Numbered from the stretch's first letter, positions 1,329 to 45,700 are shown. The stretch is 64,000 bases of DNA from Octopus sinensis (GCF_006345805.1 NC_043002.1:3224001-3288000), one strand, 5' to 3'. Notes: generated by a model not told the origin, from the sequence alone. Made by a program: numbers and translations.

Positions 1329-1377
1329 GTTGCAACAGAATCATAAAGTAGTCAAAGACAGAACGATGCCAAGAAAT
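1329..1377 (+). CDS. paralog 1 start exon (ATG 1366, MPRN)
   Basis: ttctag|G acceptor, AAT|gtatgt phase-0 donor, in frame with the next exon. Confidence 0.75.
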
Positions 1378-4300
1378 GTATGTATACTATTTTTTGTAAA
1401 GAAAATATTTCTTATTCGAACTGTTTTTAAGTTAGCAAATGATGAAAGACAAGAAACAGGTTTATGACGCTACTATAATATTATTCCCTGATATTTTAAC
1501 CAATTTAAAACCCTTTTTTTCGTTACTGACCTGGGACCGGGTGACTTTGTAAGTTACAATTAAAATACTTAGATCTTCTCTCGTTAAAATCTTTTTATCC
1601 CGCGACTTAAGCGATTGCTAATAAATTTCGTCTGTTAACCGTCAGTTTTAAGGAATTAAAAAAATGACTTTGTTCATTAAACCAATTTTAATGTTAGAGA
1701 TCGGCACCCCCCCCCCGACCGAAATTCTGCTAATTGTTCCTATATATTTCTTTGTATTTTTTGCTTTACAGTCAAGAGGAAGATACCGAGAGAGCGACAG
1801 CGATTCGGAGAAGTTCTGTAAGCTCTTCATCGGAGGGCTTAGTTATTCCACAAATGAAGAATCGATGAAAGAATATTTTGAACCGTGGGGTGATGTGGTC
1901 GATTGTGTCGTGATGCGAGATCCAAACACAAAAAAGTAAGACGGCTTCACATTTATTGTGTGTGTGTGCGTTGCCTGACCTTTGTCCTTTTGTTAGTGTG
2001 TGTGTTTCCCCCTCTTGCCCTCATTACTAAAGGTAAGCTTATTGCTTACAACTATACGATATTTTTGCTTTTAATGTATGTGATTAAAACAATTTATTTT
2101 AGAAATATCAGGTTTAATGTATAAACGATGGGAATCACAACGAAAATTAAATAATTTGAATTATATATTATATACGAATTTAGAAGTGAGGGAGAGAGGA
2201 CGAGTGAATTACCATGATTCCGGTAGTAGATGGCTCCTATTAAGACACAAAGGTAAGATCAATGGGGGGGGGTGCAGAGACAATAGAAACGGATTTCCGA
2301 CTGAGACTTCACCTCTCCTCCTCGCCGCCTTTTCTCCCCATCCCGTTGGATGTAGCTGTAGATTTTATTTTTAGAAAGTATACACGTACACTGGATTATT
2401 TGCTCTTAATCAATTTAAGCTGGATTATTCAAAATGATAGTTTCATTGTTAAGTCTTCTGAAGCTTAGATTTGAAAAATACTAAGCTGTTTTATTAATAT
2501 ATTTATTGTATTATCGGATTAATGAGAGATTAACGGTGAAACTCTTCCACCTCTGACATGGTTCCTAAAATTATTTTACTATTTTTTTTATTAAAAAAAA
2601 AATCCATTTTGATAATGTGTGTTTCTGAAAGGAGTCGGCTGGTACTTCCTGGATGGGTGCTGACATAGTTAACATTAGGATTGTGGGTTCAATCTTCAGT
2701 CTGGCGAAGGCAAAAAAAAGTTTACTCATCCCCCACATCCCAGATGAAGAAATAAATTGACAGAAAATAATGATGCATTCTGATGGCTACATATTTTTTT
2801 ATATTTCTTCCACAATATATCTTTTACCATGTGGGCCAGGTCCACAACAACACTTGTATCCTTATTTGTTCTGAACTGATGTTCATACTTAACTACATTC
2901 TTTTCGTAGGTCTCGAGGATTTGGTTTCATAACTTATAAGACAGAAGAACAAGTGGACAAGGCCCAGTGTAATAGGCCCCACAATATAGACAACAAAGAA
3001 GTCGAGACCAAGAGAGCTATGCCAAGAAATGTGAGTTCTTTTCCTATTTAGGATTTACTCGTAGCAATATGGGAGAGTTATCCTCAAAGAATGATTGTGT
3101 TCTGATTGTTTTATTTGTATTGTCTTTTTAGGAAACAGATTCTCAAATTACTGTGAAAAAATTATTTGTTGGTGGCATTAAAGAAGATACAACCGAGGAC
3201 GATATTCGTGAATTTTTTACTTGTAAAGGAAAAATCGAGTCGATTGATATGATAACTGACAAAGGCACAGGAAAGAAACGAGGTTTTTGCTTTATTACAT
3301 TTGAAGATTATGACACAGTCGACAAATTAGTATGTAAGTATAATAATAGTGTGTGTGTGTGTGTTTAGCTTTTAATTGCAAAATATTGAATAAAGATGGG
3401 AAATGAAAGAGAAAAGAAATCTTTTTTTTTTTCTAACTCCTTCACTTGAACTCTTTCTATTTTTTTAGTACGAAAATACTATGAGTTCAAAGGCAAACGG
3501 ATAGAAGTTAAAAAAGCCTTGTCTCGTGCCGAAATGAACCACAACAAACAGGCGAATATGAACCAAATGAGTGGACCGATGGGGCCGATGGGACCTGGCC
3601 CACATATGGGACCGATGGGGCCAATGGGGCCTGGCCCACACATGGGGCCACCTGGACCACATGGTAAGTTACAGCTGCCGCCTTTTTATATATTGGCCTT
3701 CATTCACTTCTCTCCATTCATACACATTTTACAACATTGTTGTATATTTTTATGATCTCTTTAGGTCGTGGGAATCGAGGTGGTATGGGTGGCGGCCGAG
3801 GTGAGTGTTTCTCCTTCCTTTCCATTAATGCACATTATTTAGTCATTAACTAAAATAATAATAATAATAATAATTAATAATAAACATTTTAAAACCTGAT
3901 AGTTTTGGACAAATTTGCACTTCTTTAGTTATTTTTGTAATCTATTCCATCTTTTGCTTCTAGTTTGCATGTGTAAAAATAGTATTTTTGTAACCCTAAT
4001 CACCTAACTCTGGGCTTTTAAAGCATCTACAGAATAGAAATTCCATTTAAAATTTTTAAGTTCAATTTTAGGATTGCTCAATGTTCTCTCCTCCCCCTCT
4101 CTATTTTTGGAACTTATATTTAGTATACAATTTCAAAATTTGGCTTGTGAAGGCATACAATGAATCTTTATTTGATTGGTGTCTCTTCTAATTGCCCAAT
4201 AACTACCCTCATCTCCTGAGTAGACATTGAAAAACTAGAGTTATCTATATAACAAGAAAACAGCTTTTAGGAGATCTCATGTTACATTGGACAGCATTTG

Positions 4301-44700: not shown

Positions 44701-45700
44701 ACAAAAATAGATTTTTAAACAATTTACAGACTTTCAAAACCAAGGAAAAAGTGAACATTTTCCATTTTATTCAAAACCGGCCAAAATTTTATGAATTAAT
44801 TGGCGAGTCTAGTTGCAGATAAAGTCTGGATTGATTGTGTCCATGACAATTTGCAGAACAAATGAATAAATATGAAAAAGAGAAATGGGAAAAACGTTTC
44901 CTTTTTGCTTGTCGAATTGAAATAATTCGAGAGAAGAAGAAGAAACTTCCCGGTTACGCCATCGAGAGACAAACATGGCGAACGAGCATCGATGATTTAA
45001 TAAAAGTCTCTCGCTTCGAGGAATATTGAGCAGGAAACGAGGAGGATTCGGCGGATTTAGAGTCGGGAGAAATAAACGAATTTCATGCAATTAATAAACG
45101 GCATTTTTTTCTTTTCTAAATTAAAAGCACCTGAGTTGCCGGCTTTTGGCAGATTTTACCATTTTTTCACACAAAAAACCTGACAATTTTACTCGTAATC
45201 TCGTGAAACAGATTTACGAATCCTTAATTTTGGTTTTAAATCTCATTTAAGAAATAAAAATAAGAAAATTTGTGGATTTTCGACTCAATTTTTTTCTCGC
45301 ACTCAGCAACAAAGAAAGATAAAGGGATTCTGAGTAAAAAGGAAAAACTATCCAAGGGAACAGGAAATCTTGCTCTTACTTCTCAATATATATATTCATA
45401 GATTAGCAAATAAGTTTCCAACATTAATTAAGAATTATTTTTTGTCATTTTTTTCTGATTTAATTCGATTTCCTTAAATTTACCGGAGAGGGGGGGGGGA
45501 GAAGGAAAAACCGTTGGAGAAAGGTTTAGGGTTAAATTTCAGACGAGGGAGCCGAGAATAGTCATTAAATACGTGACAAGAAAAGAGTTTAGTAATAAAT
45601 ATATGAGAAAAACATTTAAATTTGTTGAAAGAGTTGCAATATAATTGTAAAAAAAGTGTCTCACCTTCCTTTGCGAAGGAGGCGAATAATCTCCTTCCAT
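38697..45700 (-). CDS. hnRNP A1/A2B1-family protein, paralog 2 (about 574 aa; RRM1, RRM2, very long Gly-rich domain, M9-like PY-NLS)
   Basis: complement join(45700-45665,43777-43605,43498-43378,43166-42965,40984-40859,40553-40488,40226-40149,39887-39198,39042-38902,38788-38697) = 1725 nt open frame, all GT-AG. RNP1 RGFGFITY and RGFGFISF; GPIKG...RGSGPYGG; ends SYRR-stop. First exon is the least certain. Confidence 0.92.
38902..39042 (-). CDS. paralog 2 exon carrying M9-like PY-NLS
   Basis: ttggcag|, GAG|gtaaaa; SSNYG...[21 protein letters not shown] resembles hnRNP A1 M9 (SSNFGPMKGG...RSSGPY). Confidence 0.9.
39198..39887 (-). CDS. paralog 2 exon, 690-nt Gly/Tyr/Ser low-complexity exon
   Basis: tttccacag|, GAG|gtgagg; open frame (ORF 39121..39972), GY/NY-GGG repeats. 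Confidence 0.92.
40149..40226 (-). CDS. paralog 2 exon, 78 nt (internal alternative donor at 40215)
   Basis: ttctag|, ATG|gtacgt; [26 protein letters not shown]. Confidence 0.85.
40488..40553 (-). CDS. paralog 2 exon, RGG box (66 nt)
   Basis: gtacag|, GAG|gtaggt; [22 protein letters not shown]. Confidence 0.9.
40859..40984 (-). CDS. paralog 2 exon, RRM2 end
   Basis: ttttcag|, GAG|gtaagt; [41 protein letters not shown]. Confidence 0.95.
41233..41455 (+). mobile_element. tRNA-derived SINE (paralog 2 intron)
   Basis: GAGCTGGCAGAAACGTTAGC...GGTTCAAGTTCC B-box; same family at 63870 and inverted at 11255, 57000, 58880, 61735. Confidence 0.8.
42030..42395 (+). mobile_element. tRNA-derived SINE (paralog 2 intron)
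   Basis: GCTGTGGTAAGAAGCTTGCTTCCCAACCACATGG..GGTTCAGTCCC..GGGCAAGTGTCTTCTACTATAGCC; degenerate copies near 42640 and 13570. Confidence 0.8.
42965..43166 (-). CDS. paralog 2 exon, RRM2 (202 nt)
   Basis: ctacag|, T|gtgagt; [19 protein letters not shown]...[18 protein letters not shown]. Confidence 0.96.
43378..43498 (-). CDS. paralog 2 exon, RRM1 C-half (121 nt)
   Basis: ttaag|G, GAT|gtaagt; [40 protein letters not shown]. Confidence 0.96.
43605..43777 (-). CDS. paralog 2 exon, RRM1 N-half
   Basis: tttttag|, TG|gtcagt; [30 protein letters not shown]...DPNTK. Confidence 0.95.
44240..44391. repeat. tandem duplication (82 and 65 bp copies)
   Basis: TTAACTTCTACAA(G/A)TAATTATAAATTACTGGGTTTTTGTTTCAAAAAT...CTCTCCTTTTCAAATTA twice. 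Confidence 0.9.
44944..44980. promoter_or_regulatory. YY1-like (CGCCAT, AACATGGCG) and ETS-like motifs in intron 1 of paralog 2
   Basis: two opposed ATGGCG cores plus ACTTCCCGG within 40 bp; motif match only. Confidence 0.35.
45665..45700 (-). CDS. paralog 2 candidate first coding exon ([12 protein letters not shown])
   Basis: ATG 45700 to AAG|gtgaga phase-0 donor matching the phase of the next exon; lies beside the CCAAT box. Confidence 0.5.

Follow-up and report, generated by a model that had tools for sequence, protein, structure and literature searches.

The heterogeneous nuclear ribonucleoproteins (hnRNPs) of the A type are dosage-sensitive RNA-binding proteins, and the control that such proteins can exert on their own amount through introns in the 3' untranslated region (3'UTR) has been worked out only in mammals. 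Human HNRNPA2B1 has a 3'UTR intron close to its stop codon, and the alternative splicing of its 3'UTR is coupled to nonsense-mediated decay (NMD) of the transcript (McGlincy et al. 2010, PMC3091714). The human A1 and A2 proteins compensate for each other by way of their 3'UTRs (Chang et al. 2021, PMC8068773), and, according to that paper, A1 has an inhibitory effect on its intron 10 (Suzuki and Matsuoka 2017, as cited there). HNRNPD and HNRNPDL regulate the 3'UTR splicing both of their own and of each other's transcripts, again coupled to NMD (Kemmerer et al. 2018, PMC5824352), and HNRNPA2B1 and CBX3 have been described as an ancient microsyntenic pair (Irimia et al. 2012, PMC3514665). For cephalopods, squid hnRNPA/B-like proteins 1 and 2 have been reported at presynaptic terminals (bioRxiv 10.1101/2021.07.02.450876), and our literature search found no paper on the genomic arrangement of cephalopod hnRNP A genes. 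The current report concerns a stretch of 64,000 nucleotides (nt) from Octopus sinensis (GCF_006345805.1 NC_043002.1:3224001-3288000), which we call the window and whose positions are counted from its first letter, with negative positions lying before it. An initial annotation of this DNA had recognized two hnRNP A-family genes that converge tail to tail, here called gene 1 (plus strand) and gene 2 (minus strand), and had proposed that the arrangement serves their mutual regulation.

We consider it probable that the window contains two of the three members of an old and conserved cephalopod hnRNP A cluster, that the traits shared by the two genes were inherited from the family at large, that control of dosage in trans would be the likeliest form of regulation among them and that their convergence is incidental. 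The evidence for this reading comes from the structures of the genes, from their surroundings and relatives in other genomes and from the conservation of their 3' regions.

Two convergent genes of the hnRNP A family

Both genes were rebuilt from the raw sequence, and the claim that two genes of this family converge on opposite strands is borne out by the resulting models, of which the one for gene 1 coincides with a RefSeq isoform. Their parts are listed here, with a slash marking a splice boundary.

Gene 1
1321-1377, plus strand: alternative in-frame 57-nt 5' cassette exon, from the exact mapping of six RefSeq isoforms
1366-1377, plus strand: first coding exon of the rebuilt model
1772-1935 (164 nt), 2910-3030 (121 nt) and 3132-3333 (202 nt), plus strand: coding exons for the RNA recognition motifs (RRMs), with two matches to Pfam RRM_1
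3469-3663, 3765-3800, 5068-5139, 6451-6513 and 8853-8954, plus strand: linker and Gly-rich coding exons, all entered in phase 1
9102-9175, plus strand: last coding exon (9102-9151) and start of the 3'UTR, with ...GGGYRR, TGA at 9149-9151, 24 nt of 3'UTR and then the donor CAG/GTAAAT

Gene 2
45741, minus strand: inverted CCAAT box, promoter-proximal
45700-45665, minus strand: first coding exon, the same exon as in the O. vulgaris model P0020
43777-43605 (173 nt), 43498-43378 (121 nt) and 43166-42965 (202 nt), minus strand: RRM-coding exons, with two matches to Pfam RRM_1
40984-40859, 40553-40488, 40226-40149, 39887-39198 (690 nt) and 39042-38902, minus strand: Gly-rich coding exons
38788-38663, minus strand: last coding exon (38788-38697) and start of the 3'UTR, with ...SSYRR, TAA at 38699-38697, 34 nt of 3'UTR and then the donor CAG/GTATTT (last exon base 38663)

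The model of gene 1 spans 1366-9151 (+) and specifies a product of 338 residues that is letter-for-letter the same as O. sinensis RefSeq isoform X2 (XP_029638401.1). All six O. sinensis RefSeq isoforms of the gene map on the window without mismatch, and gene 1 is already annotated in RefSeq. The count of ten coding exons for each gene agrees with both rebuilt models but is true of only some isoforms of gene 1, since its exons 7 (5068-5139) and 8 (6451-6513) are cassettes, one or both of which are omitted from isoforms X4-X6. The ATG at 1366 is the start of isoform X2 and sits within the cassette 1321-1377; the usual first coding exon, ATGCCTGAG (MPE), is found at -1249 to -1241, about 1.2 kilobase pairs (kb) before the window, and CCAAT and TATA boxes precede this usual start. 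The 57-nt cassette is inserted directly behind the first three codons (MPE) of the gene, and we take it to recall the small B1-specific exon near the N-terminus of human HNRNPA2B1.

The model of gene 2 spans 45700-38697 (-) and specifies a product of 574 residues. Its exons 1-7 and 9 agree with the O. vulgaris model CAI9725015.1 as mapped on its own genome, with exon 5 being 126 nt long in O. sinensis versus 129 nt in O. vulgaris, and an alternative donor inside the last coding exon, after 38735, is the one used by the O. vulgaris model P0020. The exon junctions 2-5 of a gene of this type are spliced as predicted in a cDNA-like contig from Tara Oceans. This contig (L019; ERZ908071 k127_1733711) is a gene 2-like hnRNP A cDNA, 77% identical and fused to a symplekin-like cDNA; as a chimera after exon 5, it was rejected as a source for the spliced 3'UTR of gene 2. 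Most of the unusually long Gly-rich domain of gene 2 is contained in the single 690-nt exon (39887-39198), in repeats of the GGYGGGG type, part of which the O. vulgaris model splices out, and the lengths of the Gly runs differ.

It seems most improbable that gene 2 is a little-used or decaying copy and that the pair has no joint function. All ten of its exons are open and have canonical splice sites, and the mismatches that separate it from its paralog are biased to third codon positions. In its residues 1-260 the protein is 100% identical to that of O. vulgaris (local alignment, with one difference in the length of a Gly run), as compared to ~98% identity for the flanking DNA and for the alignment of O. 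vulgaris chromosome OX597819.1 to the window; the C-terminal exons and the stop codon are kept in Argonauta, and there is the 77%-identical spliced cDNA from the Tara Oceans sample. These observations outweigh, in our opinion, the features that might be read as signs of decay, namely an unusual W in the RRM1 sequence DPNTKW, the expansion of the Gly-rich domain to 370 residues, the odd C-terminus of the O. vulgaris model and the failure of protein searches, including one aimed at short gene 2 models, to return a gene 2 protein from O. sinensis or O. bimaculoides.

The entry phases of the coding exons are 0,0,2,0,1,1,1,1,1,1 in both genes, all of their introns are of the GT-AG type and both proteins end in YRR-stop; the matching phases and the common ending are as originally described. 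The RRM exons of 121 and 202 nt had been called identical between the two genes, which is correct for their lengths but not for their sequences; these are only 69-70% identical, with the mismatches concentrated at third codon positions. The likeness between gene 1 and gene 2 is one of homology and not of chance.

Membership in the hnRNP A/B family was examined by several routes. Each of the two proteins has two matches to Pfam RRM_1 (E = 2.8e-36 and 1.8e-35), and the best matches of both in similarity searches are proteins named hnRNP A1, A2B1, A3 or 87F. Each protein has a Gly-rich C-terminal low-complexity domain with RGG and GY repeats, of 143 residues in gene 1 (44% Gly, 9% Tyr) and 370 residues in gene 2 (64% Gly, 8% Tyr). 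With their two RRMs, Gly-rich tail, A-type best similarity and an exon design typical for the family, genes 1 and 2 belong to the hnRNP A/B proteins. The two products are distinguished by a block resembling a proline-tyrosine nuclear localization signal (PY-NLS) or M9 sequence, GP(M/I)(K/R)...SQR.SGPYGG, which is present in gene 2 (encoded by exon 39042-38902), in the additional paralog gene 0 introduced below, in both of the retro-derived copies of the family and in the scallop gene, and is absent from gene 1 (exon 9, 8853-8954) and from its Argonauta and cuttlefish orthologs. The block in gene 2 resembles the core of human M9. The Pfam entry for M9, PF11627, had no match in any of the proteins examined, fish A1 included, and is hence uninformative. 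Nuclear import of the gene 1 protein may, to judge from the missing block, be different.

A cluster of three genes and its relatives

A search of the whole genome located a third intron-rich paralog, gene 0 (RefSeq P0076), which maps exactly to C6:3206570-3219330, or window positions -17431 to -4671 (+), in tandem with and upstream of gene 1. It has 11 coding exons of 9, 155, 121, 205, 78, 21, 45, 48, 153, 114 and 53 nt, the same pattern of phases as genes 1 and 2, an NRR-stop ending and a donor 29 nt after the stop codon. The last block 3' of the gene 0 stop that is conserved in Argonauta ends ~0.9 kb before the promoter of gene 1. The locus is therefore not merely a pair: the order of the cluster is gene 0 and gene 1 in the plus orientation, followed by gene 2 in the minus orientation. 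On the strand opposite to gene 0, and ~43 kb upstream of it, there is a gene for a chromo-shadow (HP1/CBX) protein (C6:3156905-3163824, -), and a CBX gene also adjoins the hnRNP A genes of scallop (L022) and fish (L018).

The comparison of synteny covered O. bimaculoides, Argonauta hians, scallop and fish, with no decapodiform locus among them. Genes 0 and 1 are adjacent in O. bimaculoides, and in Argonauta hians they are followed by a converging gene that has the same Gly-rich exons as gene 2 and a product ending in ...GGGGSSYRR-stop. Conservation of the pair in other molluscs, which had been put forward as something to be looked for, can thus be affirmed for the octopods insofar as the order with the converging gene 2 is kept in Argonauta and the gene 0/gene 1 adjacency in O. 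bimaculoides, but it does not extend to the scallop, where a single gene occupies the CBX-linked site and the 10 kb on each side contain no other called RRM gene. A locus in Bradybaena had no neighboring gene within 10 kb and is uninformative on synteny.

The other copies of the family in the O. sinensis genome look retro-derived. One is intronless (C1425:12053-13048) and another has two exons with the intron at a new position (C18:21897843-21907585); the intronless copy is 94% identical to an annotated O. bimaculoides protein. Retro-derived hnRNP A copies with long open frames were seen in addition at C6:23.55 and 23.60 Mb and at C1:204.89 Mb.

The ancestry of the cluster was examined in a maximum-likelihood tree of the RRM region that holds A-type proteins of molluscs, arthropods and vertebrates and no outgroup from beyond the A type. 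The mollusc proteins, including those of genes 0-2, group together in this tree. Gene 0 is placed beside the intronless copy (support 99/96), and gene 2 beside a set composed of the C18 copy and the gene 1 orthologs (94/87). The nearest relative of gene 1 overall is the unlinked two-exon copy on another chromosome (C18); among the intron-rich genes of the cluster, genes 1 and 2 are each other's closest relatives (94/87). The gene 1 group includes a protein of cuttlefish (99/96), and the split between gene 1 and gene 2 therefore predates the divergence of octopus and cuttlefish, which took place a few hundred million years ago. A fair reading of these groupings is that genes 1 and 2 arose by an ancient inverted local duplication and not by a recent event.

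Many of the traits that the two genes share are found in relatives outside of the pair. Genes 0, 1 and 2 and the scallop and fish genes follow one family design, in which the two RRMs are parted by a phase-0 break, the Gly-rich exons are in phase 1, the last coding exon is short and a donor comes soon after the stop codon; of these traits, the ladybird gene has the Gly-rich exons in phase 1 and the donor behind the stop. In scallop the exons measure 3, 197, 121, 202, 129, 48, 135, 105 and 41 nt and are in the same phases as in octopus, and the gene ends in YNRR-stop with the donor TTAG/GTAGGT ~30 nt after the stop; the RRM2 exon is thus 202 nt long in scallop and 205 nt long in gene 0, and both have the 121-nt exon. 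An A1-like gene of fish has 10 coding exons, phase-1 Gly-rich exons, a last coding part of 53 nt and GTAAGA 11 nt post-stop, and in the ladybird gene GTAAGT follows the stop by 3 nt. The exon lengths, phases, RR ending and stop-proximal intron evidently constitute a family design that is older than the cephalopod duplications. Because gene 0 and the single-copy scallop gene agree with the pair in the 121-nt exon, in the phases, in the RR-stop and in the donor beyond it, these traits are inherited and were not specially kept by the pair. Genes 1 and 2 are accordingly true inverted paralogs with a stop-proximal 3'UTR intron like that of human HNRNPA2B1, as the initial annotation had it, but its further suggestion that the inverted duplication retained a particular 3' architecture is not supported, in view of the same traits in gene 0 and scallop. 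The matching exon lengths, phases and C-terminal ends of these neighboring paralogs are inherited and give no evidence of a special pairwise mechanism.

Post-stop introns and 3' untranslated regions

Features downstream of the two stop codons were assigned by comparison with the genomes and gene models of Argonauta and O. vulgaris.

9176-17973, plus strand: 8.8-kb 3'UTR intron of gene 1, from the junction in Argonauta model P0183 and a conserved acceptor
17974-20680, plus strand: terminal 3'UTR exon of gene 1, 2.7 kb, its probable extent set by a conserved AATAAA at 20653 and the end of conservation ~30 nt later
38662-38513, minus strand: candidate 150-nt post-stop intron of gene 2, with the acceptor TTTTAG/GAGAAG partly conserved in Argonauta
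38512 to ~37080, minus strand: putative extent of the 3'UTR exon of gene 2, with a minus-strand AATAAA at 37104
35133-35049, minus strand: candidate 85-nt downstream exon of gene 2, with the acceptor GAACAG/ and the donor CAG/GTAAGA, both conserved in Argonauta
34363-34310, 22390-22285 and ~21809 to ~21710, minus strand: distal 3' exons of the O. vulgaris gene 2 model P0020, with a minus-strand AATAAA at 21734

An intron just after the stop codon had been claimed for both genes, and donors are indeed present 24 nt (gene 1) and 34 nt (gene 2) beyond the stop. The donor of gene 1, CAG/GTAAAT, is located between 9175 and 9176, at the TGA plus 24 nt. The Argonauta hians model P0183 keeps the last coding intron, reads in another frame across this donor and joins an exon at window position 17974, and the acceptor there, TCTAG/CTGGATACG, is conserved in Argonauta; from this junction and its conserved acceptor it follows that gene 1 has an 8.8-kb intron in its 3'UTR. 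The O. vulgaris model P0081 reads likewise across the post-stop donor of gene 0, and Argonauta has the same donor sequence for gene 2, AACATTCAG/GTA. Annotated models that read across the donors of gene 1 (in Argonauta) and gene 0 (in O. vulgaris) thus show the post-stop introns to be real. Within the long intron of gene 1 there is a 106-nt element (15690-15795, +) conserved with Argonauta. This element includes the acceptor-like sequence TTTCTGTTCAACCCTAG/G along with three UAG motifs that are conserved too, and it might serve as an alternative exon or in the control of splicing.

Three blocks of the gene 1 3'UTR, 17974-18621, 19249-20016 and 20416-20685, are 89.7%, 91.1% and 94.3% identical to Argonauta (~1.6 kb). 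The loss of conservation shortly after a conserved AATAAA, as at 20653, is the typical signature of a poly(A) site, here for the plus strand. The mismatches are spread evenly over codon positions and the gaps would break a reading frame, which marks the terminal exon as noncoding; on the same grounds we rejected as coding an open reading frame (ORF) at 17768-18190 that the Argonauta model reads as protein. By comparison, RRM exon 2 of gene 1 is 89.0% identical to Argonauta, with 16 of its 18 mismatches at third positions. The gene 1 3'UTR, which is a single-copy sequence in the genome, is therefore as conserved as RRM exon 2 and under very strong constraint. The 3' block of gene 2 (37000-38485) is 76.5% identical to Argonauta over 1.5 kb. 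The candidate exon 35133-35049 is inside another conserved block (35271-34894), ~2 kb beyond the main 3'UTR of gene 2, and ~30 nt of the intron downstream of it are conserved as well. If this exon is truly spliced in, its junction would be far enough from the stop codon for NMD.

The interval between the genes

The stop codons of genes 1 and 2 are 29,545 nt apart, and the main poly(A) sites, as placed by the signals listed above, would be separated by ~16 kb (~20680 on the plus strand versus ~37080 on the minus strand). Nothing in the interval of ~20.7-34.9 kb aligns with Argonauta, and the one stretch tested within it (30400-31700) is a high-copy dispersed repeat. The annotated models of genes 1 and 2 show no overlap, as judged from annotation and the probable transcript ends and not from reads, and a search for complementarity between the converging 3'UTRs gave no match at E <= 0.1. 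It had been proposed that convergence adds a route for antisense cross-talk; with ~16 kb between the likely poly(A) sites, an unconserved interval and 3'UTRs that are neither similar nor complementary, we find such cross-talk to be without support in the sequence.

A form of this idea holds that the inverted pair is coupled in cis, so that, through convergent transcription or 3' extensions, antisense transcripts overlap or polymerases collide and help the paralogs to adjust each other's amounts, in addition to the effect of 3'UTR splicing coupled to NMD. Argonauta retains the tail-to-tail order, with a gap of only ~3.9 kb between the conserved 3' blocks of genes 1 and 2, and the longest annotated isoform of gene 2, in O. 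vulgaris, bypasses the normal stop and ends near 21710, ~1 kb from the probable poly(A) site of gene 1 at ~20680. The distal exons of this isoform are not conserved in Argonauta, however, and one of them differs by 1 nt in length between the close relatives O. vulgaris and O. sinensis. The conserved candidate exon beyond the main 3'UTR of gene 2, with its conserved donor, also counts in favor of coupling in cis, but the distance between the main poly(A) sites, the unconserved and repeat-bearing interval and the lack of overlap and complementarity all speak against it. Moreover, the tandem genes 0 and 1 have the same 3' design, from which it follows that the design is independent of convergence. 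We judge coupling in cis to be quite improbable.

Dispersed repeats were observed at 30400-31700, 48010-48612, 54000-56100 and 60800-61600 of the window, and one dispersed repeat is present at high copy number (at least 916 candidate copies, of 71-76% identity). A Pfam search of ten large ORFs detected reverse-transcriptase fragments beyond the promoter of gene 2, and the five ORFs tested between the stop codons had no Pfam match. No Rfam family was found in the window.

Possible regulation among the members of the cluster

The events that we envision for this locus begin with cephalopod-specific duplications of a single CBX-linked hnRNP A gene, such as that of scallop, one of which would have been inverted. 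Each gene would have its own long 3'UTR exon beyond the post-stop intron, and the proteins might regulate one another in trans by way of the post-stop intron and the 3'UTR. The effect could be exerted through inhibition of splicing, through extra 3'UTR splicing with NMD or through 3'UTR-mediated decay, as in the vertebrate paralogs, and the convergent orientation would most likely be incidental. Of the autoregulatory design known for the A2B1 type, the octopus genes match the stop-proximal intron and the conserved UTR, the latter more weakly in gene 2, and auto- or cross-regulation in trans is plausible by homology.

The position of the introns has consequences for how NMD might enter into such regulation. 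In genes 0, 1 and 2 a 3'UTR intron begins 29, 24 and 34 nt, respectively, after the stop codon, in each case below 50-55 nt, and because it is so close to the stop (less than 50 nt) its splicing should not trigger NMD. A second 3'UTR intron is suggested for gene 2 by the distal O. vulgaris exons and by the candidate exon 35133-35049, and gene 1 has only the intronic element 15690-15795; a second UTR intron capable of triggering NMD is thus hinted at for gene 2 only.

Several observations weigh against the reading of the locus as an inherited cluster with control in trans. Over and above the 12 UAGG motifs observed in the gene 1 3'UTR versus 7.8 ± 2.5 expected, which is not significant, there is no significant enrichment of UAGG in the 3'UTR of gene 2 either, and comparisons of UAGG, UAGGG and UUAGG to dinucleotide shuffles gave no clear enrichment. 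The 3' regions of genes 0, 1 and 2 share only low-complexity BLAST matches; with no detectable sequence in common between the paralog 3'UTRs, any common cis element would have to be short. The poly(A) sites, the 150-nt intron of gene 2 and the 85-nt exon are placed by conservation and consensus signals, and the negative outcome of the protein searches for gene 2 in O. sinensis and O. bimaculoides leaves its expression in O. sinensis putative. The convergent order, finally, has been kept since the split of Octopus and Argonauta, which may leave room for a role of the arrangement itself.

The first two of these points would also be expected if the constrained 3'UTRs serve other ends, such as localization of the mRNAs to axons or synapses, microRNA action or translational control, with no mutual sensing and the cluster a relic of duplication. 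Squid hnRNPA/B-like proteins 1 and 2 are reported to occur at presynaptic terminals (bioRxiv 10.1101/2021.07.02.450876), and the loss of the PY-NLS-like block from the gene 1 lineage suggests divergent roles rather than redundancy. We nevertheless think this explanation rather unlikely, because the octopus introns sit where the autoregulatory intron of HNRNPA1 does, A1 and A2 compensate for each other through their 3'UTRs (PMC8068773, PMC3091714) and autoregulation is the rule for RNA-binding proteins of this kind.

Another possibility, which would join elements of the foregoing, is that a stop-proximal intron module of bilaterian age, regulatory in function, exists in three copies in the octopod cluster, that read-through isoforms of gene 2 terminate there ~1 kb from the poly(A) site of gene 1 and that autoregulation in trans, together with local interference in the zone of termination, balances the nuclear gene 2 protein against the gene 1 protein that lacks the signal. 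We regard this combination as improbable. Control of dosage in trans within an inherited cluster remains the reading that we prefer.

The locus is an ordinary, annotated gene family in a conserved local cluster, and what is of modest interest is how deeply the stop-proximal intron and the gene 1 3'UTR are conserved. The same intron position in octopus, scallop, ladybird and fish, together with a 2.7-kb octopod 3'UTR conserved like coding exons, suggests a very old control element, and the gene 1 3'UTR is a defined invertebrate sequence that is open to testing.

Comparison with known systems

The squid hnRNPA/B-like proteins 1 and 2 (Lico et al. 2015; Lopes and Lico 10.1101/2021.07.02.450876) are the closest in terms of organism, being cephalopod members of the family with at least two paralogs. 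They differ from the genes described here in that they have been studied biochemically, without genomic arrangement or 3'UTR structure, and their kinship with genes 0, 1 and 2 is given here at the level of the family. HNRNPD and HNRNPDL are likewise two paralogous hnRNPs with two RRMs each, but they are of the D-type subfamily and not a convergent pair, and they serve as an analogy only.

Human A1 and A2 resemble the octopus genes as paralogs of the same family that set each other's levels through their 3' regions. The regulated intron of human HNRNPA1 is the last one, beside the stop codon, and hence at the same position as the octopus introns. Unlike genes 1 and 2, the human paralogs are on different chromosomes and their regulation is purely in trans.

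Human HNRNPA2B1 shares with the octopus genes a highly conserved 3'UTR, the family, the design of two RRMs with a Gly-rich region and the CBX neighbor. It is unlike them in that the post-stop intron of octopus gene 1 is 8.8 kb long and not small, in that a second, NMD-related intron is only hinted at in octopus, for gene 2, and in that the octopus genes are known from sequence alone. With respect to the ancient HNRNPA2B1-CBX3 microsynteny, octopus, scallop and fish are alike in that the CBX gene is located upstream of the first hnRNP A gene and is oriented oppositely to it, whereas the gap between the two is ~43 kb in octopus and the hnRNP A side has become a cluster of three.

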